A stretch of DNA of 64,000 nucleotides from Thalia democratica (GCA_965202585.1 OZ241829.1:35464001-35528000), one strand, 5' to 3'. Positions 1 through 16,334 are shown, counted from the first letter of the stretch. Numbers and translations are program-made. The notes: generated by a model from the sequence alone, not told the origin.

Positions 1-88
1 GCCCTTAATTTTCAGAAAAATATTATTTGATTCTTAAAAAGCCTATTACTAATTTGAAATTTTTAAAATTGTTTATATTTCATTGTTA

Positions 89-412
89 CAGGGTTGCCAA
101 AAAACCTGGAAAAGCCTGGAATTTGAAAACTTTTGTAAAAAACCTAAAATTTTTAACAATTTTAACATGTTAAGTAGTAAAATTTTGATTTGACTCAAAA
201 AATCTATCATATAGTTGAAAATTTTTTGTCATCATCAAAATATTTTTTATTAAATACCAAATTTTAAGTAGTATTACAGTATCTTTTCAATATTTTTATA
301 CTATTTAACACAGTTTATTACCTTAAACTTAACTTTAAATTAAAAATAGACCCAAAAATGTGTACTTTTAAAAACCTGGAGAAAATTTGCCAAAAAACAT
401 TTGGCAACCCTG
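89..412. mobile_element. Non-autonomous DNA transposon (MITE), CAGGGTTGCCA-TIR family A
   Basis: TIRs CAGGGTTGCCA (89) and TGGCAACCCTG (ends 412). Flanks ttgtta/ttttta match at 5 of 6 bases. Interior is similar to 2687-3059. Confidence 0.8.
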
Positions 413-707
413 TTTTTAGTATAATTTTTTTAAGGGCAATTTGAAAGTAAATCAAAATAAGAAAAAAGTGTTATAACTAGATTAATATGATGTGTGTAGA
501 ATAAAGTTTTATATTTCTATGATAAAGTGTTTTAATAAATTAATTTTTTACATATCACAATCTAATTATGGTCCTTGTAACAAAAACTATTAGTTTAAAA
601 TTTATAAGATTAAATTATACATATTAATTTATTTTGTACTACTAAGGCATTCCAGTCAAATAGTAATATTACCACTTTATTCTCAATAGACTTTTTTAGA
701 TCAAAAA

Positions 708-1184
708 ATGGAAAAAATCTACTTTTTTCTTTTTTTGTCTCTCCTAATGGCAAAAGGAAATTGTAACCATTGGACAACAAACTGGTGGAAAGAATATGTA
801 AGTAAAATACCAACGCAGTACAACATCAATAATGAACCTCTTACAGTTTGTAGCACTGACCCAATGACCGGTTGGTACAGAAATGGCAAATGCATGACTG
901 GCAAAAGGGACAGAGGAACTCATGTTGTCTGCGCAGTCATGACTCAAGAGTTTTTAGACTACACTGAAAGTAGAGGTAATCCTCTAGCTACACCAACCCG
1001 CTCTTTTCCTGGTTTGAAGGTAGGCGATCGTTGGTGTCTTTGCTCTTTAAGATGGAAAGAGGCTGAAGAAGCATTTAAAGCCCCATTGGTGGATATTAGT
1101 GCTACTCAAAAAAAAGTTTTGGATGATGTGGATGAAGATGTTCTAAGATCTTATGCTTTGAATGAGAAAGTCATACCAGTTTAA
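708..1184 (+). CDS. Secreted DUF2237-family protein, paralogue 1 (158 aa, intronless)
   Basis: Motifs PLTVCSTDPMTGWYRNGKC, THVVCAVMTQEFL and FPGLKVGDRWCLC..RWKEA match the DUF2237 consensus as I recall it. Hydrophobic N-terminus (YFFLFLSLLMAKG) looks like a signal peptide. Confidence 0.88.
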   Translation: MEKIYFFLFLSLLMAKGNCNHWTTNWWKEYVSKIPTQYNINNEPLTVCSTDPMTGWYRNGKCMTGKRDRGTHVVCAVMTQEFLDYTESRGNPLATPTRSFPGLKVGDRWCLCSLRWKEAEEAFKAPLVDISATQKKVLDDVDEDVLRSYALNEKVIPV

Positions 1185-2686
1185 AAATTTTATAAAACTT
1201 GATAAATTGGTTTGAGTTTTTTAACTCCTCACATAATGGGCTTCCTTGGTACACTTTTATACATTAAGTAGTAGTAGTAGTTTTTTTTAAATTATATACT
1301 TAAAAAACTTTATACTGTTTACATTTTTTGGTTTCTGTTTTGATTGTTTCTCATTAGTGTTTAGTTTCTACTTGTTTAGTCTAAAATAGTTCTTAAACGT
1401 ATCTATTCATCTTTTTTGTTTGCCTAGAAACTTTTAAAAGAATTAGTTTAAAAAATTTTGAGCGTATACTAAATTTATTAATGTTAAAATTCAAAGCTAA
1501 AAAACTTTAATTAAATGCACAGAGAAATTTAAAACTTAAAAATGAACAGTTTTGTTTTTTTTTTCCATAAAAACCTTTGTTTTTATGTACCATTAGTATG
1601 TTCTTAAACTATGTTATTTTGCACATTTTATCTAAAAATCATCAAACTTATAGTACCAATACCTACAACTTGCCAAATGAAGTGTTTCGTACTAAGAATA
1701 TTTAATTTAACAAACATTAACAACTGTATAGAAATTTTAACTTTGTTGTATAATAAAATTATTCACTACGATCTCTTTACTTAAACTAATACTATTAAAA
1801 AAATGTAAGTCATAAATAAGTTAACCAAGTTTTTATTAGCTTTATTAAATACATTCAGTAGACTAAACAATATACACTCTTAGAAATTTAAACTATAAGA
1901 AGTAAGCTATATACTTCAAAAAGTTATTTTTAAATATTTAGAACAAGTTTTATGCAATTGGATTTTCCCTGAGCCAGTTTATGCAGAATAAGTTTAACAG
2001 TTGTTTATGTAGATCAGACTAAATATTCAAGAGTATATAAACTAAGTTATACTTTAAGCTTTGAAACAAAGTTTATTATTGCTTACACAAATTTAGATTT
2101 TTTTTGCATATGTTATTATTTCAAGTTTATGTCTTAAACAGTTATGAACAAAGTTAATGCATCTAGTATAAAAATATAATATTTTATCTCTATAAATTTA
2201 GTATGTAAAGTTGATCTTATTATAAGTCATTTAAGTTTTTTATAACTTTTAAGTAGTTAAATTTTTATAAGCTAAAAGTATTGCTTTTATACAATAAAAG
2301 TGTTTAATTTGCTTAAAAGTTGGTTTTTGCTACTTTAAAAGTTTTTTTTTTTTGGTCATATAAAATATAAGGAAAATAAATGCCACCCTGGTTCTTAAAA
2401 TTTATATAAAAATGTATTGAGTTGGAAGTTATAAGTAAATAATAGCAATAACACTGCATACACTGCAAATATATATTTGTGCGTTAAAATTCAGGCTAGC
2501 TGTGGTTAATTTATTGTTTTCTCAAAAAAACTTTGTTCAAAAAATGTTTGCCTTGAACAGTTAATAGTCCTGGACAAGACATTAAACTGTATCCGTGGTG
2601 TATGACCGAAAGGTTTCTTGGTACGTTAGGTTAGACCAAATATTTTGAACCTTTTTTTTTTTGTATTTTAAACATAATGATAATAA

Positions 2687-3059
2687 CAGGGTTGCCAAAA
2701 TACCTTGTATCCTAAAAAAAAACCTGGAATTCGAGAAATTTTGAAAAGAACCTGGAATTTTAAACAATAAAAACCTGAAATTTTAAACAATTTTTACATT
2801 ATAAGTAGTAAAATTTCGATTTGACACAAAAAATCTATTGTATAAGTTTTTTTTTTTATCATCCAATTTTTTTAATTGATAAAAACATTTAAACAAGCTT
2901 TAAGATATCTTTTCAATGTTTTTATACTATATAACACAGTTTTTTTTACCTTAAACTTACTTATAAACTAAAAATAGACGCTAAATGTGTAATTTTAAAA
3001 ACCCTAGAAGGTATTTTGAAAACTCGGAGAAAATTTTCCAAAAACATTTGGCAACCCTG
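2687..3059. mobile_element. MITE, CAGGGTTGCCA-TIR family A, 6-bp TSD
   Basis: TIRs at 2687 and 3049-3059; taataa flanks both sides. Confidence 0.85.
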
Positions 3060-3542
3060 TAATAAAATACCATTCTATTAAACAATAAAATTTATATGGA
3101 CTTCTTTTAGATTCTTTTTGTTACTTCAGTTTCTACCAGAAAATAAAACCGTTTTGTCATAAAGTTTATAAAAATCTTGGTTGTTAATTTTTAAGCAGCT
3201 TAGCCAATTTAGGTCCTAAAAATATTGTTCTTTTATTTATAGGTTTATGTTTTTAAACTCCTTACATTTTTTTAATTGAAGCTATATCTTGAGCAGTACA
3301 TAATATAAATTGAAAAAAAAAAAGATTAATGTTTTAAACCATTCAAATTTCCATTTAACCAATAAACAGTAATAAAGGACAATAGTTATATGAACAGAAT
3401 ATATATCAACAGTTGATTTAATTAAATTAAGATTTAATGCTATATCTTAATTAAAAAGTAAATTTACTTGTTTTACTTTATGAGAAAAGGTGAGTTTTAT
3501 TTAAACTTTGAGTTTACTACAGATTTTAGAAGTTTATATGAA

Positions 3543-3980
3543 ATGGATAAAGTTTACTTCAGTCTAGTCATTTTGTTCATATTTGGGCGAATAGGAAATT
3601 GTGACCAAACCCAGTACAATGTAAACAATCAACCGCTTACAGTTTGCGGCACTAATCCAATGACCGGCTGGTACAGAAACGGAAAGTGTATGACCGACGT
3701 CAATGACTGGGGAACTCATGTAGTCTGCGCGGTCATGACCAATGAGTTTTTAGGCTACACCAAAAGTAGGGGCAACGACCTGTCCACACGAAGAGGCAGT
3801 TTTCCCGGTTTGAAGGTGGGTGATCGTTGGTGCCTTTGCTCTTTAAGGTGGAAAGAAGCTCATGATGCTGGAAAAGCTCCTTTGGTTGATATGAGTGCTA
3901 CTAACAAGAAAGTTTTGAACGATGTGGAAAAAGATATATTGAAATTGTATGCTGTGTCATCAAAAAAAGTTGAGTTGTAG
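3543..3980 (+). CDS. Secreted DUF2237-family protein, paralogue 2 (145 aa from ATG 3543)
   Basis: Same DUF2237 motifs as paralogue 1. ATG at 3543 begins a signal-peptide-like segment (MDKVYFSLVILFIFGRIGNC); the TTG start at 3468 in the ORF track is unlikely in a eukaryote. Confidence 0.86.
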   Translation: MDKVYFSLVILFIFGRIGNCDQTQYNVNNQPLTVCGTNPMTGWYRNGKCMTDVNDWGTHVVCAVMTNEFLGYTKSRGNDLSTRRGSFPGLKVGDRWCLCSLRWKEAHDAGKAPLVDMSATNKKVLNDVEKDILKLYAVSSKKVEL

Positions 3981-4944
3981 ATAAATTGAACTGCTAAAAC
4001 CTGGTTAGAGTAGAATGAAACTTTTAAGTTATCTAGCAGTCTTCCTTAGTGAGCTTGTAAATGTTTAGAATGGTGTACATAGTTTTTGTTTACATCTGAT
4101 AAACTTGTACATGTATCATCAGAGTGTTTTATCAAATTCTTTTTTTTTCAAGTTAGTTAGTTACACCTCTTATTTTCTTAAGTTTGTACAAGTGTATTTT
4201 ACTTATTCTAGTGAAGCAAAACTTTAGTTAAACATATTTCTACTCAATTTAATTTCTTTATTATTTTAAGACAAAATTATTTATGAAAATTCTAAGTTAG
4301 TAACACATTGAAGCCAATATCTTCATTCTTAAGCTAAATGATAAAATATTTCTGTACTGTTTGTTGCTACACAAGATAAACAGCTTAATCTCCTAAGATA
4401 TATTCTTTGTTCTTTTTGCTAAGTTAGTTCCAGTATATCTTTAAAGTTTTTGCTTTTTTTTTTCACTAGCTAGATAAAAACCCATCATGCTTACAATAAA
4501 AAGCTATGATTAAAAATAAATTCCATACTGTCATGTTAATTACATTTAGTACCATTGCTTAAATCAATTTAGATAAGTAAAGTGTAAACATTTATTTTAA
4601 AGTAGTTAGAATTTCGAAAATAAATAACTTAAAATAATTTATTTTATAATTACAAGTAATGCGACTATAATAATTTGTCTGTCTTAGTATTCAGTTTCCA
4701 AATATGTTATTTATTAAATGCGTCAATGCAGATTTTACCAATATAAATAATATTTTATAACCAATAGTTTATGCTTACAAATCTACAATATTCCTTATTT
4801 TAATTTATAATATTTTTCAAGAATTTTTTGTAGATAAATGTAATATTTTGCCTAAAACTATTTAAAGAAAATAATTTAGGGTTCAACTTTTTTATATATT
4901 ATTAATCCACTAGAAACTTTCCAAGTCTTAGTTTAGTTTTAGCT

Positions 4945-5212
4945 AAGGGTTGCCATTTGCTGAATTTAGTTTTTTAAAATTCAAAGCTCGTTACAGTTCT
5001 AAAATATTTTAAAAATATATGGTAATTTTAGAGTAACTCTAAAACTATTTCTATACTAACGATAGTACTTTTATTTTTCATGTTTTTTGCACACAAAATA
5101 GGTATGATTTTGAAATTATTTATGAATTTAGAAATTTAAAGTACTAGTCGAACACCAAGGTCTTGCCTATACTCTTAGGCTAGTTGTTTTTCTATAAAGA
5201 GTGGCAACCCTG
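4945..5212. mobile_element. Degenerate MITE with GGGTTGCCA TIRs
   Basis: aagggttgcca at 4945 and tggcaaccctg at 5202-5212; no TSD recognisable. Confidence 0.55.
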
Positions 5213-5383
5213 ATTACGTAGAAATTGTTTTTTTTTTTTTTGTTTAAATTATTACACAAATAACTTTAAATTTTTAACTTTTGCTTATAAAAACATTTTA
5301 ATAGCATTTTATTACACTATTCGTTTGAAATTCTGCTAACGTTTGTTCAAACTTTAGAGAGCGTAGTTTTATTTAAATTCAAA

Positions 5384-5827
5384 ATGGGCAAACTTCTACT
5401 GTTTCTCCTCATCGGAGCGTTGGTGATCTCGGGAGAGTGCAGGTACCGCAGGAGGCGCATGAAGACGCAGCTCAACGTGAACGATCAACCGCTCTCGGTT
5501 TGCAGCACCGACCCGATGACCGGCTGGTACAGGAACGGAAAGTGCATGACCGACAGCTACGACAGGGGAACTCACGTCGTCTGCGCGGTCATGACCGACG
5601 AGTTTTTGGAGTACACCAAGAGCAGGGGCAACGACCTGTCCACTCCCAGAAGCTACTTTCCCGGCTTGAAGGCGGGCGACCGCTGGTGCCTTTGCGCGTT
5701 GAGATGGAGGGAGGCTGAGAGGGCGGGCAAAGCTCCGCTGGTTGATATGAGCGCCACCAACAACAAAGCTCTCGTGTACAACAAGAAAAAAGTGTTGGAG
5801 TCGTACGATGCATCATCTCAAAACTGA
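5384..5827 (+). CDS. Secreted DUF2237-family protein, paralogue 3 (147 aa, GC-rich)
   Basis: DUF2237 motifs (CSTDPMTGWYRNGKC, HVVCAVMTDEFLEYTKSRGNDLSTPR, GDRWCLCALRW) and a signal peptide (MGKLLLFLLIGALVISGEC). Confidence 0.9.
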   Translation: MGKLLLFLLIGALVISGECRYRRRRMKTQLNVNDQPLSVCSTDPMTGWYRNGKCMTDSYDRGTHVVCAVMTDEFLEYTKSRGNDLSTPRSYFPGLKAGDRWCLCALRWREAERAGKAPLVDMSATNNKALVYNKKKVLESYDASSQN

Positions 5828-8680
5828 TTACGCTCAAACTTTCCAAAATATTTTTATTTTGACTTGGGTCACTAGGTGTTTGATTCGCCTTTATTATGTT
5901 TTGTCTTTTTTGAAGAGGTTCTTCTCTTTTTTTACTGTCACTTTTACTGTAATTTTCATTTAAATCATTAACATTATTTCTTCAAGCATTATGATCGTGT
6001 ATTTTTTATTATTATTCAAGTTTGTGTTTTTAACAAAAAAACTGCTTATAGTTTTTTTTTTTTTTTTTGAATCTTACGTTTAATTTTTTGTAAAATATGT
6101 ATAAAAACCAATAACAAACTGTTGCTTTTATTGAGATTTTATAATCGCTTTTTATTAATGTGTGTACATTTCTGCAATAAAAAAAAATTCACATCAGTTT
6201 GTTTATTTTAATAAAAAAAACACAGAAAGTTTGAACTAAATAATAGAATACAGCTTCTAATCATAAAACATAGCCTATAGTTTTATCATTGTTGATATAT
6301 GAAATTTAAATTTTTATAGAAGTAAAAAAAAAAAGTAAATAATGTTCATTGCAAGAGAAACTACTAAAAATAGCCATATTCTATAGTTTCGAAATCTTTT
6401 TTTACTCCTAATGAAAAAACCATTGAAAAAAAATTCAAGTAGATCTGATTGATAAAATTAGATAATTGGTCAGAATACGAATGGTTAGAGTTTAAACTAT
6501 TGTGTTACCTTAATACTGTTAGTTTTAATTGAAAACAAATCAAAAAAGTTGCAAGTATAGACCAAATTGGATATATTTTTAGATTTCTTTAAGTGAAAAC
6601 ATTACTTTTGATTATTTTCAAATTGTGATGTTGTATGAACTTAAAAAATATTTTGTACGGTTTTTAAAATTGTTGTTTATTGAACAATTTTAGAATACTG
6701 AATTCTTGAGTTTTTTGTCAAAGTCATAAAAAATAATTAAATCAGTTCTTGATAAATTTTTGTTTATGTTTTGGTATTAAATACTGACAAATATCGGTGT
6801 TTTTTTTTCATTTAACATTGTTTAAAAAGAGACCTCAATTTCAACCCGAGCTGAACTCCCACCGAATCAATTCAAAATAAATAAAAACTACGACCAAGAG
6901 TTGGAAGTAACAGTGATAATAATAAAAAGTTTCTAGTCGGAGTAGTGAGTATACCGTTTGAAATATCATACAAGCTTTTGTATTGTTGTAGAATGTTTGA
7001 TAACTGTTTACTTTTAAACAGTTCTCGTAAAACACTTAAAAATTTTTAACAGTTCAAAAGTATTTTGCGTCACCCATGACTGGTTAAAATGATTAAACAG
7101 AAACAACTTATTTGAATCACTTAATAAAAATAAAAGTATAATTTTTATAACCCTTAAATAATTACCTCGAAATTTTTACAGTAATCAATATTTTGTCTAA
7201 AGCAGAAACTTTTTTGTTACGACTTATACATCATTAACAATGTGCGATAGAATAGTAAAATCTTGAAAACGTAAAAAAAGCTAGAATCCTAGACATGTCT
7301 GACAAGTGACAATCTACTTCTCTTAAAAATAACCTGAATGATTAAGTTGTTTTTAAAACTATTTAGGTAACTATTTAAAGAACAAAATTAAATGCATAAT
7401 AACTGTAAAAGTAGCCAATTTTATATTTATAAAAATATTTTAGTTTTCAAAAATCTATAGATTAAAAAAACCCTGGATTATTGCTATAAAAAAAAACTAA
7501 CTTTGTTCTGCTTATATGTAGAGTATATTTTAAAATATAGATATTTATTAAACTATAAAGCAGAAAACTCCAGACTGATCGCTAAAATATGTTAGATGAA
7601 GTATATTAAGACTTCAAAAACGATTAAATATATTCTATTGTTTTTAACTGAGATTTAAAAGAACAATAGTACTAAAATAGTTGTTCATAATCTAAATAGC
7701 AAAATTAACGTTAGGTTATAAAGACGAAATACTCACGATTAGTTTTATTAATATAATAACAGAGTTAAACATATACAGCAAATATCAGAACTACAGGTGT
7801 AAATTTAAAAATTTTTATTTTTTGTAAGATAATTTATTAAAATACATGAAGAGATTAACAAACTCATCCAATAATATATATAAAACAACAACCTTCTTAT
7901 TATATAAATATTTGTTTATTGTACTTAATTTAATTTTAAAGCTTTAGCATTTTTCAGTTTTTTAGCATTTTTACAATTATTTTTTTTTCTAAATATTAAT
8001 TAACAACCAACTTTGATAGTTAATTTTAATTGTTAAACTGAGTTAAAAAGTTTACTGAAATTGAAAACGAAAAAAAAAGTTAGTTTATGAAGTCATTATG
8101 TCACTACTAATTGAGGTAAAATATGTATATCAACAATAAGTAAGGTAATGATTTTGTCTAAAGATTCTATCTAAAAATGTTTGAATTAATTTATTTAACT
8201 AAACAAACTTAAAAAGAAAAGCCATTTAAACGACTAAAAGCAGAACTTAAAACTATTTTTGTGTATGTTAAAACTTCATGCAGTTTAAAAATTTTGACTA
8301 AACAATTTCAATGTTCAACTACTTTAGAACTAAAAGGTAGTATGGTAGGAGTTATACAAAAATGTTTTTAGTTTTTGAGATTAATTAGTAGTATATTTCT
8401 AAAAACTAATACTGAGACTTACAAAATATATCTTGTTTATCTTGTTATGTTTTGGTTATTCTAGAAATTTTACTTAGAGTTTTATGTTTTATTAAATATA
8501 TTTTACTTTATTATGGTTTGTAAAATTTCTTAACACTGTTAAAGTTTCTTAACATTATGTGTTGATAACACTTAAAATTTATTTCATGTACTAAATGTAT
8601 TTATAAGTTTTATCACTTATTACAAACTATATGATAAACAATGAACTTCACCGCACGATCAACAACAACAGCATCCGAGA

Positions 8681-14546: not shown

Positions 14547-16334
14547 TTAGTTAAACCATTTATCGATGTTTAAGTCGGTTTGAGTTTCGCAAGACAACAT
14601 GTCTTGTTTGAACATTGTTTGAGTGTATGAACTGGTGAGGTTGTCTTGCCAGTCGTTTTGTGGAATTTCTGTTTGAGTTTCTATGTTGCACAGAAAGTCA
14701 TCACAGCTTTTTATTGCTCTCTCATTAAACAGTTCAGTTTGCGAACTTGTTGAAAAATTCATTGAAGATGCCTCATTTTGTATTCCAGATGAATCTAATA
14801 GATCATTTAACTTTGTCTTATGGCATGGAGAGGGGAGATATATGTTAAGAAATTCTTCTTCAGTCATGTTGCTAGCTTCTTTCTGATCAACGTTTCTGCT
14901 CTTACTATTCAAATACTGACTTGCAAAGTCTACAGGGCCTGTTTGTAAATCCTCAAAAATAGTTTGGGTAGAAAAGTCTTTTTGACATTCATAACTTTTG
15001 ATAGAACAATTAAGATTTTTATTTTTAGTGTCATATTTAGTTTCAATTGTCTGGGTACAACTACTCAGTTGATTTTTGGTAAGCTGATCAGTAAACACAT
15101 TGTCTATACCAGTAGAAAACTGGGTTTGGCAAGAAAAATTACAAGCCAGTACAGGTTGATTTTGAGAAATTTTATCTGAGTACCAATTTTGCAGAAAACT
15201 TTCAGAGTCTAATTGTTCTGTCTGAGTTGAAATTTCTTGAGGTAGTTGTGATATTTGATCAACGGACAAACATGCTTGAGTTGAAATTTCTTGAGGTAGT
15301 TGTGATATTTGATCAACAGACAAACTTGTTTGAGTTGAAATTTCTTGAGGTAGTTGTGATATTTGACCAACAGACAAACTTGTTTGAGTTGAAATTTCTT
15401 GAGGTAGTTGTGATATTTGATCAACAGACAAACTTGCTTGAGTTGAAATTTCCTGAGGTAGTTGTGATATTTGACCAACAGATAAGTTAGTTTGAGTAGA
15501 TAAATCTTTAGATAAACATACTTCAGAATTATAGTCAATGTTGTTTAGATTGGAACATGGTAACAAGCTACCATCTTCCATTTGAAGGTACAAACAATTT
15601 TCAGATTTATTTTGATTTAGTTGTGATTTATCCGTGGAAAAGTCTAATTGATGAATGTTCTTTTGATGCGAACAGTTACTAATGTGCAAAGGCTTAGTGT
15701 TGCACCTTACAATAAAGTTTTTAGAAGGATCTTGGACAATACTAATTGGCTGGTGATCACTTTCAACTTCCATTACAATGGTGAATTTAGACTTGTCTTC
15801 TGTTTTAGGTAAGATATGTTGGTAACGCCTTTTTTTATTGATAGTTTCAATTTTTGGATTTGAAACTACATACATTCTTGGTGCAAAATTGATTGAATGC
15901 TTGTTTGCAGTTGCATGAGCTTTTAAACTTGAAAAGGTTGGAAATGTACTTTTACATGAACATGAATATTTCACACCACAGTCCTCCATATGTACATTTA
16001 ATAAATGTTTGGACCTGAAGTTTTTATCACACTTCTTACAAGTAAACTCGTTGTGAAAATCTTTATGTACACTTTTGAAATGTTGCCTTAATAAGGATAG
16101 GCTTTTAAAGGGTAAATTTCTATTTTGGTGGCGTAAGCATTTTTCAACAGGGCAAAAATAATGAATTTGATGTTTTTTTGGGTTAAAATTGTGCACAGAC
16201 TTCAAATGTTTAGTCACTGCAGGCTTATATAGTAGTATTTCACAATCTTTAAAAGGGCATTTAACTCTTTTAGGTGGTTTAATAAGCTCTGTTATATCAG
16301 GTGCACATATAACATTATTAGATAATTGATCCAT
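14547..16334 (-). CDS. ATMIN: ATM interactor / ASCIZ orthologue (four N-terminal C2H2-type zinc fingers, TQT-rich C-terminus), intronless 595 aa
   Basis: Finger set CPFKDC..HLKSVH, YFCPVEKC..RQHFKSVH, CKKC..HMEDCG, CSC..H matches ATMIN. The C-terminus has nine TQT motifs of the LC8-binding type and ends ETQTD. Confidence 0.88.
   Translation of the reverse strand: MDQLSNNVICAPDITELIKPPKRVKCPFKDCEILLYKPAVTKHLKSVHNFNPKKHQIHYFCPVEKCLRHQNRNLPFKSLSLLRQHFKSVHKDFHNEFTCKKCDKNFRSKHLLNVHMEDCGVKYSCSCKSTFPTFSSLKAHATANKHSINFAPRMYVVSNPKIETINKKRRYQHILPKTEDKSKFTIVMEVESDHQPISIVQDPSKNFIVRCNTKPLHISNCSHQKNIHQLDFSTDKSQLNQNKSENCLYLQMEDGSLLPCSNLNNIDYNSEVCLSKDLSTQTNLSVGQISQLPQEISTQASLSVDQISQLPQEISTQTSLSVGQISQLPQEISTQTSLSVDQISQLPQEISTQACLSVDQISQLPQEISTQTEQLDSESFLQNWYSDKISQNQPVLACNFSCQTQFSTGIDNVFTDQLTKNQLSSCTQTIETKYDTKNKNLNCSIKSYECQKDFSTQTIFEDLQTGPVDFASQYLNSKSRNVDQKEASNMTEEEFLNIYLPSPCHKTKLNDLLDSSGIQNEASSMNFSTSSQTELFNERAIKSCDDFLCNIETQTEIPQNDWQDNLTSSYTQTMFKQDMLSCETQTDLNIDKWFN
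15219..15500 (-). repeat. Coding tandem repeat, 54-bp unit x ~5.2 (STQ[TA]xLSV[DG]QISQLPQEI)
   Basis: Near-identical 18-aa units are visible in both DNA and protein. Confidence 0.95.

Follow-up and report, generated by a model that had tools for sequence, protein, structure and literature searches.

The salp Thalia democratica carries, on a stretch of 64,000 nucleotides that is termed the window hereafter (GCA_965202585.1 OZ241829.1:35464001-35528000), an array of small genes that encode proteins of the DUF2237 family (PF09996). At least four intact genes and one truncated copy are arranged in tandem at this locus, and three of the intact ones, designated g1, g2 and g3, lie inside the window. 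According to the reading preferred here, to which a probability of roughly 0.7 is assigned, these are host-expressed genes for putative secreted preproteins, the ancestor of which came from outside the animals via a branch of giant-virus-like and bacterial sequences, and a second DUF2237 gene on chromosome 10 is of separate descent. The array represents a known protein family in an unusual host and not a new kind of system.

Tandem organization of the array

The initial annotation described a trio of intronless open reading frames (ORFs) on the same strand, and all three are present on the plus strand (Table 1). Their products share 61-67% pairwise identity, and in the case of g2 the ATG at position 3543 is a likelier start than the TTG at 3468. 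The absence of introns from g1 and g3 is documented by RNA contigs of two studies, which are colinear with the genome, and each array gene would constitute a separate intronless transcription unit. Description as a trio turned out to be too narrow, because directly upstream of the window there is a 5'-truncated copy of g2 together with a fourth intact gene of the g3 type, which encodes 146 amino acids. When the window and the 20 kb preceding it were compared with themselves by blastn, two duplicated blocks were resolved (Table 1). The proposed tandem amplification is supported. The most recent step in the growth of the array would have been the copying of a block that carried part of g2 and the whole of g3. 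Genome-wide, nine stretches match DUF2237, five on the chromosome of the array and four on another chromosome.

Expression and integration into the host genome

The g1 messenger is processed at both ends in the manner of a tunicate transcript. At the 5' end, metatranscriptome contig X1 record 1 reads GGG followed by ATTCTATTTGAATA and then follows the genome from position 688, with the genomic AG situated 18 nt before the g1 start codon. The 16-nt spliced leader ATTCTATTTGAATAAG, whose final AG coincides with this genomic AG, corresponds to the sequence published for Ciona (PMC1488885); it was seen on the g1 mRNA but not on the contigs of g2 or g3. Followed by a GT donor, the leader occurs in 358 exact copies in the genome, as opposed to 0 for a reversed control. 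These copies, which constitute the spliced leader RNA gene family of the tunicate, include an array on C26 (7129, 22214, 37299, 52384), with a spacing of 15,085 bp over most of the copies listed, and also cluster at C4:80.16-80.42 Mb. At the 3' end, X1 record 3 stops at position 1771 and continues with 21 non-templated A residues where the genome goes on with tctctttactt, which places the polyadenylation site 13 nt past an AATAAA signal and about 590 nt past the stop codon.

RNA contigs colinear with g1 stem from runs X1, X2 and X6, and those of g3 from three runs of two studies, spanning position 5360 to beyond 6000. Both genes are covered by marine metatranscriptomes of two independent studies, including one oligo-dT-primed library. 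For g2 a single contig was retrieved (3742-4063), and since this lone contig could derive from the truncated upstream copy, expression of g2 is weakly supported. Furthermore, contig L084, which was assembled independently from a metagenome, runs collinear to positions -1855 to 2836 of the window at 94% identity and carries a g1 ortholog of likewise 94% DNA identity.

A contaminant or a chimeric assembly, in which the ORFs would belong to a co-sequenced bacterium or virus, is suggested by the mainly bacterial occurrence of DUF2237 and by the 56% GC of g3 in a genome of 25% GC. It is contradicted by the spliced leader and poly(A) tail on the g1 mRNA, by flanks of 21-24% GC that contain an interspersed host repeat, by the independent syntenic contig, by host actin-family genes of equal or higher GC content at third codon positions (GC3), and by a spliceosomal intron in the chromosome-10 paralogue, and it is accordingly given practically no weight. 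The genes are genuine, expressed genes of the host, with contamination, the concern attached to the initial annotation, effectively excluded.

Domain, motif and fold

All three proteins match the PF09996 model from position 2 to 115 of 115 with scores of 147-153 bits (gathering threshold 25 bits; E values 2e-43 to 3e-45), in agreement with the family assignment made at the outset. They conform to the family pattern C...PxTG.R.G.C...D.G.H..C...GNDL...FPGL..GD.WCLC..RW. Across 41 positions defined as conserved at 85% or more in an alignment of 100+ homologues, g3 retains 41 of 41, including five Cys, one His and the WCLC..RW block, while g1 departs at D84P and A105S and g2 at P88R and A105S. None of these departures affects a Cys or His, so that the five conserved Cys and the His are intact in every protein of the three, as initially annotated.

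Identity of g1-g3 to three solved DUF2237 structures amounts to 52-60%. The AlphaFold model of g3 attains a mean predicted local distance difference test (pLDDT) value of about 92 (92.1), with the domain at 97-98, and superimposes on 3USH_B with a Z score of 23.4 and a root-mean-square deviation of 1.4 A over 118 aligned residues. Beyond DUF2237, the best match in a structure search with this model reached only Z 2.4, and no functional analogue was found. Hence, the array proteins have the full-length domain, the fold and the conserved Cys, His and Trp residues in common with the DUF2237/COG3651 reference proteins (PF09996; 3USH of Salinibacter ruber, 2LQ3, and 4IOH, Tll1086). On the other hand, they differ from these bacterial proteins, which are single-copy and mostly leaderless, by residing as tandem, multi-copy genes in an animal nuclear genome, by a predicted signal peptide of the eukaryotic type followed by a variable linker, and by lacking two residues before the FPGLK motif.

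N-terminal leader and linker

The N-termini of g1-g3 consist of M-x-K, an apolar run of 12-14 residues and a subsequent G-x-C. Assessed by hand (positive n-region, h-region of 7-15 residues, small residues at -3/-1), this layout corresponds to a signal peptide on each paralogue, as the initial annotation had it, with predicted cleavage contexts SG/EC, KG/NC or IG/NC (the slash denoting the cleaved bond). The same n-h-c layout recurs in 11 of 11 tunicate sequences of the secreted type that were scored, namely the three window genes and eight homologues. In the g3 model, a helix at residues 3-15 (pLDDT 62-70) precedes an unstructured linker, which leads over to the domain. The g3 linker reads ECRYRRRRMK; as judged from its sequence, the RYRRRR stretch would fit a furin/kexin-type site. 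Each product would accordingly be built as a preprotein with a cleavable signal peptide of about 17 residues, a short and fast-evolving linker, which in the g3 type would hold a free Cys in addition to RYRRRR, and a complete DUF2237 domain that retains the Cys/His pocket of the family. Such proteins would enter the endoplasmic reticulum and have their place of action beyond the cytosol, be it after secretion or within a compartment of the secretory pathway.

An N-terminal membrane anchor or another targeting signal, which would render the proteins membrane-tethered or organellar instead of secreted, is rather unlikely. This explanation draws on giant-virus relatives, in which an apolar N-terminus of 15-17 residues gives way to a long polybasic tract, as is typical of signal anchors, and on proteins of a second tunicate lineage with an uncharged run of 20 residues. 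The array proteins themselves exhibit a classical n-h-c arrangement, with a Lys before the run and small residues (G-x-C) after it, and the run is too short for a membrane span because it comprises only 12-14 residues.

The initial annotation further assumed that DUF2237 proteins usually lack a signal peptide and that secretion was gained after transfer. Scored by a crude hydrophobicity rule, an N-terminal leader is present in 50 of the 105 nearest non-tunicate matches of g3 and in 9 of 22 scorable giant-virus DUF2237 loci, as compared with 4 of the 115 scorable nearest matches of the leaderless chromosome-10 gene and none of 23 prokaryote genome loci. The first assumption therefore fails for this branch of the family; since about half of the nearest non-tunicate relatives bear leaders, secretion was not clearly gained in the tunicate, and the second lacks support. 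A leader-bearing bacterial form, P0425, also groups with the second tunicate lineage. The leader may therefore have arrived together with the gene, even if P0023, the nearest of all relatives, has none.

Relatives of the array proteins

A search of 5.8 billion proteins retrieved close orthologs or paralogs of g1, g2 and g3 and two further paralog types, all from marine assemblies. No protein named as animal by NCBI or UniProt occurred among the best 120 matches of this search or of those made for the second tunicate lineage and the chromosome-10 gene, in which eukaryote genomes were not searched directly; for the chromosome-10 gene, the query was an 82-aa ORF reference with region restriction and not the full spliced protein.

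Nearest to the array outside the tunicates is P0023, which is 73.5% identical to g3 and leaderless upon re-reading of its DNA. It is encoded on a dense, ORFan-rich contig of 78 kb that also features VWA, Peptidase_S74, cathepsin, E2 and NifU genes and that is read, by its gene content, as belonging to a large DNA virus. The S74 protein of this contig has 129 relatives in IMG/VR; one of its ORFans has no viral relatives. On the contig of the P0010 group, a three-domain mRNA capping enzyme and RNA_pol_N adjoin P0010. Moreover, DUF2237 is encoded by 28 IMG/VR loci, 15 of them in giant-virus metagenome-assembled genomes (MAGs). Together, the giant-virus proteins (IMG/VR GVMAG, P0010 and P0023 contigs) show the highest non-tunicate identity to the array and the same two-residue deletion, and in many of them, as in g3, basic residues come after a hydrophobic segment at the N-terminus. 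They differ in that the viral leaders exceed those of the array in length and have extended Lys/Arg tracts resembling signal anchors, that some contain an extra domain of about 160 residues, and that the closest viral-like form, P0023, has no leader at all.

DUF2237 is common on giant-virus MAG contigs (IMG/VR loci L022-L049 and Logan contig L021). Many of these proteins combine an N-terminal membrane segment with a long Lys/Arg tract, and some, at 280 aa, possess an additional domain at the N-terminus, PF16156 being listed next to PF09996 for two of them. These forms are not described in the retrieved literature that mentions DUF2237.

Two bacterial proteins, P0171 and P0425, are also close to tunicate sequences. 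A second group of tunicate sequences (TUN2; P0017/19/20/423) is 55-63% identical to the array and has a predicted signal peptide followed by RYRYR. Its transcript contig begins with the same spliced leader, and its next-best matches, past its own close relatives and the unplaced P0424, are proteins of the g3 type. P0425 is a DUF2237 protein with a predicted signal peptide on a bacterial contig of 72% GC (L090:6001-6459, JGI 3300045922); it has the motif NLDGEPL.VCGTDP.TGYWRNG.CSTG in common with TUN2 and is a possible donor type for that lineage. P0424 (L091, a JGI 3300019018 transcript) is a leader-bearing DUF2237 mRNA of an AT-rich eukaryote with a poly(A) tail and no spliced leader seen, and it sits basal to TUN2 and P0425. 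Finally, a feature search of the Atlas returned DUF2237 clusters only, one of them dominated by Chlorophyta (166 aa).

A second DUF2237 gene on chromosome 10

The four matching stretches on chromosome 10 are the two exons of one gene, present twice (Table 1); this second, leaderless and intron-bearing gene was overlooked in the initial annotation. A single GT..AG intron (phase 0, 471 bp, 25.5% GC) interrupts the gene, whose GC3 is 0.71. The protein is 72% identical over its full length to a protein of Endozoicomonadaceae, compared with 50-52% to g1-g3, and 70% identical to one of Pseudoalteromonas. Because these gammaproteobacterial proteins are its nearest relatives, the gene was probably acquired from bacteria in its own right, and an acquisition separate from that of the array is the most likely interpretation of the sequences. 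In addition, the two residues before FPGLK that are missing from g1-g3, P0023 and several giant-virus and bacterial proteins are retained in the chromosome-10 gene.

Trees and origin

Trees were computed from 116 aligned columns for a large set of 120 rows and a focused set of 67 rows. In the 120-row tree, the array lineage (TUN1) forms one clade (98/82), which joins P0023 and P0171 (83/86) and then the group that contains TUN2 (85/87); the chromosome-10 gene is placed among the bacteria, next to a protein of Chromatiales. In the 67-row tree, TUN1 is sister to P0023 (95/91), TUN2 groups with the GC-rich bacterial P0425 (95/86), and the chromosome-10 gene groups with the Endozoicomonadaceae protein (97/57). 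When all tunicate copies were constrained to one clade, the approximately unbiased (AU) test yielded a marginal rejection on the focused set (p 0.044). At least two entries of DUF2237 into tunicates are favoured by these comparisons, though not proven. The donor pool would be a DUF2237 branch represented in giant-virus-like and bacterial genomes, many members of which already bear leaders, and the gene would have entered before the sampled relatives of T. democratica split, to be followed by tandem duplication. Horizontal acquisition, as proposed initially, is upheld insofar as the nearest relatives are viral or bacterial and not animal, while the AU tests settle neither the donor nor the number of transfers; a horizontal origin with subsequent amplification is plausible.

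Several points weigh against the preferred reading. Only 116 aligned columns underlie the trees and AU tests; the deep branch that connects the array with giant viruses is weak (70/91, then 49/69), and the bacterial P0171 is also near the array in one tree. A single clade of TUN1 and TUN2 was not rejected (AU p 0.12 and 0.18), nor was one clade of all tunicate copies on the 120-row set (AU p 0.106). The 12 kb that were read of the P0023 contig, virus-like by gene content, showed neither a capsid nor a polymerase gene as a hallmark. Export of the array proteins and their action outside the cytosol are deduced from sequence, with secretion and cleavage being predictions. Moreover, Foldseek finds DUF2237 models in AlphaFold database entries that presumably belong to algae, fungi, a copepod and a rotifer, which leaves some probability to an older eukaryotic history with many losses.

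Vertical inheritance would imply that an old eukaryotic or metazoan DUF2237 gene was kept in tunicates and lost in most animals, the secreted form being a lineage-specific elaboration. Eukaryotic-looking entries with long N-terminal extensions in the DUF2237 clusters of the AlphaFold database, the Chlorophyta-dominated Atlas cluster, and the existence of TUN2, a second tunicate lineage with spliced leader and secreted-type forms whose union with TUN1 the AU tests tolerate, are all compatible with such a history. It is nevertheless improbable, considering that named animal proteins are missing from the best 120 matches of each search, that the best non-tunicate relatives lie on viral-like and bacterial contigs, and that the identity to those proteins (62-74%) is as high as among the tunicate paralogs.

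Still somewhat less probable is a single acquisition, in which one DUF2237 gene entered or was inherited, with the chromosome-10 gene as parent, the array arising by retroposition, and the signal peptide and faster evolution being added later. The array is intronless and the chromosome-10 gene has a phase-0 intron, a loss that retroposition would explain, and the 120-row set permits one tunicate clade. Conversely, the modest identity between the chromosome-10 protein and g1-g3 contrasts with the closeness of the former to Endozoicomonadaceae and of g3 to the virus-like P0023; the unconstrained trees part the two, the focused AU test disfavours their union, and the residues before FPGLK set the chromosome-10 gene apart from the array and its viral and bacterial relatives. 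Entry of the array gene from outside the animals, separate from that of the chromosome-10 gene, remains the preferred reading.

Domestication of bacterium-derived genes has a textbook case in tunicates, the cellulose synthase. The DUF2237 array resembles it as a prokaryote- or virus-type gene that is fixed in the nuclear genome, undergoes host mRNA processing and is conserved across related species. It differs by its tandem amplification, by possibly two to three separate entries and by having no known biochemical role.

Selection on the array genes

The DUF2237 domain of the array is under purifying selection. The ratio of nonsynonymous to synonymous substitution rates (dN/dS) amounts to 0.12, with dS 0.61, between g3 and its L085 ortholog from a more distant relative, which answers the check proposed with the initial annotation; it is 0.19-0.22 between array paralogs and 0.065 between two members of TUN2. 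For g1 (708-1184) and its counterpart at L084:3351-3827 a value of 0.82 was obtained, though the 21 nucleotide differences, of which 13 change the protein, are too few to interpret. The changes are concentrated in the leader and linker, in the loop that precedes FPGLK, and at the C-terminus. Relaxed or diversifying selection could be at work in g1, with counts too small for a judgement.

Repeats, composition and surroundings

The initial annotation placed the genes among the same miniature inverted-repeat transposable elements (MITEs) that were said to recur across the window. An interspersed host repeat does lie between g1 and g2 (Table 1), with at least 6204 candidate copies at about 78-84% identity on all large contigs of the genome and a read depth of up to about 5e5 in DNA run X8. 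Nevertheless, none of the repeats from positions 1-8000 has three or more further copies in the rest of the window, and inspection of this element for MITE structure revealed no convincing terminal inverted repeats.

Base composition was considered as a sign of recent transfer. The GC content of the window is 21-33%, and GC3 falls from 0.78 in g3 to 0.46 in g2 and 0.33 in g1, with 0.25-0.29 in two neighbouring host ORFs, which might be taken for graded amelioration. This interpretation was ruled out, since exons of the host actin family (L076, L077, L081 and L083) span 0.52-0.93, the genome as a whole having about 25% GC, so that the value of g3 is no foreign signature, and the chromosome-10 gene is likewise GC3-rich. 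In a related species, GC3 of the g3 ortholog is 0.58. In general, heterogeneity of GC at codon positions is strong among native host genes and can mimic a foreign signature.

Apart from the paralogs, no long ORF is present from -20 kb to +8 kb around the array. An endogenous giant-virus insert was also ruled out, as neither viral genes nor further long ORFs were found over the interval that begins 20 kb upstream and ends at the next host gene. Elsewhere in the window there is a well-supported CDCA7-type zf-4CXXC_R1 gene, which speaks for host sequence. The minus strand at 14547-16334 carries a single-exon ORF of 595 aa with a tandem 18-residue repeat (LSVGQISQLPQEISTQTS-like), for which Pfam gives only a weak C2H2 zinc-finger match; its earlier label, ATMIN, is tentative.

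Table 1. Coordinates of the DUF2237 genes and associated features (positions in the window unless a chromosome is named)
Feature	Position	Strand	Description	PF09996 E value
Trans-splice acceptor AG of g1	688-689	+	from metatranscriptome contig X1 record 1; 5' untranslated region (UTR) 690-707	
g1	708-1184	+	158-aa preprotein: predicted signal peptide at about residues 1-17, 20-aa Trp/Asn-rich linker, DUF2237 domain	2.4e-43
3' UTR of g1	1185-1771	+	AATAAA at 1753-1758, poly(A) addition at about 1771	
Interspersed host repeat	about 2665-3072	.	short interspersed nuclear element (SINE)/MITE-like; between g1 and g2	
Candidate acceptor AG upstream of g2	3528-3529	+	possible only	
g2	3543-3980	+	145-aa preprotein: predicted signal peptide, DUF2237	3.2e-44
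Segmental duplication block 1	3735-4842	+	99% identical copy 7.5 kb upstream, outside the window; left edge inside g2	
Segmental duplication block 2	5369-5857	+	98% identical; upstream copy contains the intact 146-aa g3-type gene	
g3	5384-5827	+	147-aa preprotein: predicted signal peptide, linker with Cys and polybasic RYRRRR, DUF2237 domain	3e-45
Chromosome-10 DUF2237 gene	G000:C10:30735092-30735943 (= L006:1489-2340)	+	leaderless, 125 aa	
Inverted twin of the chromosome-10 gene	near G000:C10:31218636-31219771 (L005)	inverted	98% identical, about 484 kb apart	

Possible function and meaning

The suggestion that the array might form a defence system or supply an extracellular effector finds no backing. 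The array proteins have no match in PADLOC at E of 0.1 or below and none in NCBIfam, no partner genes lie nearby, the fold is unlike other solved structures, and evidence for a new defence system is absent. The literature on DUF2237 is sparse, and searches of it found no treatment in animals, tunicates, viruses or giant viruses. DUF2237 is found together with rhodopsin and photosystems, and its knockout weakens phototaxis in Synechocystis (PMC5932025). In addition, the conserved pocket of a bacterial DUF2237 protein docks purine-nucleotide compounds in silico (PMC13712998). By analogy, the array proteins would be small, soluble and either binding proteins or enzymes, relying on the same pocket as their bacterial relatives, and it is tentatively proposed, with low confidence, that they may be exported binders of small ligands. 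To the points raised above against the preferred reading it has to be added that this ligand idea stands on a single study, in which compounds were docked to a bacterial protein (PMC13712998).

In a more far-reaching scenario, which is a long shot, pelagic tunicates would have captured DUF2237 two to three times: a cytosolic form from an Endozoicomonas-like gammaproteobacterium, and one or two leader-bearing forms from giant viruses or bacteria. The leader-bearing form would then have expanded into a secreted family that resides in mucus, tunic or blood and acts on a small molecule outside the cells, e.g. by sequestering microbial purine-nucleotide signals. If true, DUF2237 would for the first time have an extracellular role in an animal, and giant viruses would have served to carry the gene into chordates.

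Few marine protein families that lack an assigned function are as widespread as DUF2237. A chordate with several expressed copies of the leader type, which are subject to purifying selection, indicates that the domain is probably also used outside the cytosol, and it offers a eukaryotic system for the search of the ligand. Moreover, the locus constitutes a well-anchored case of a non-animal gene family that became fixed in tunicates and points to giant viruses as carriers of DUF2237.

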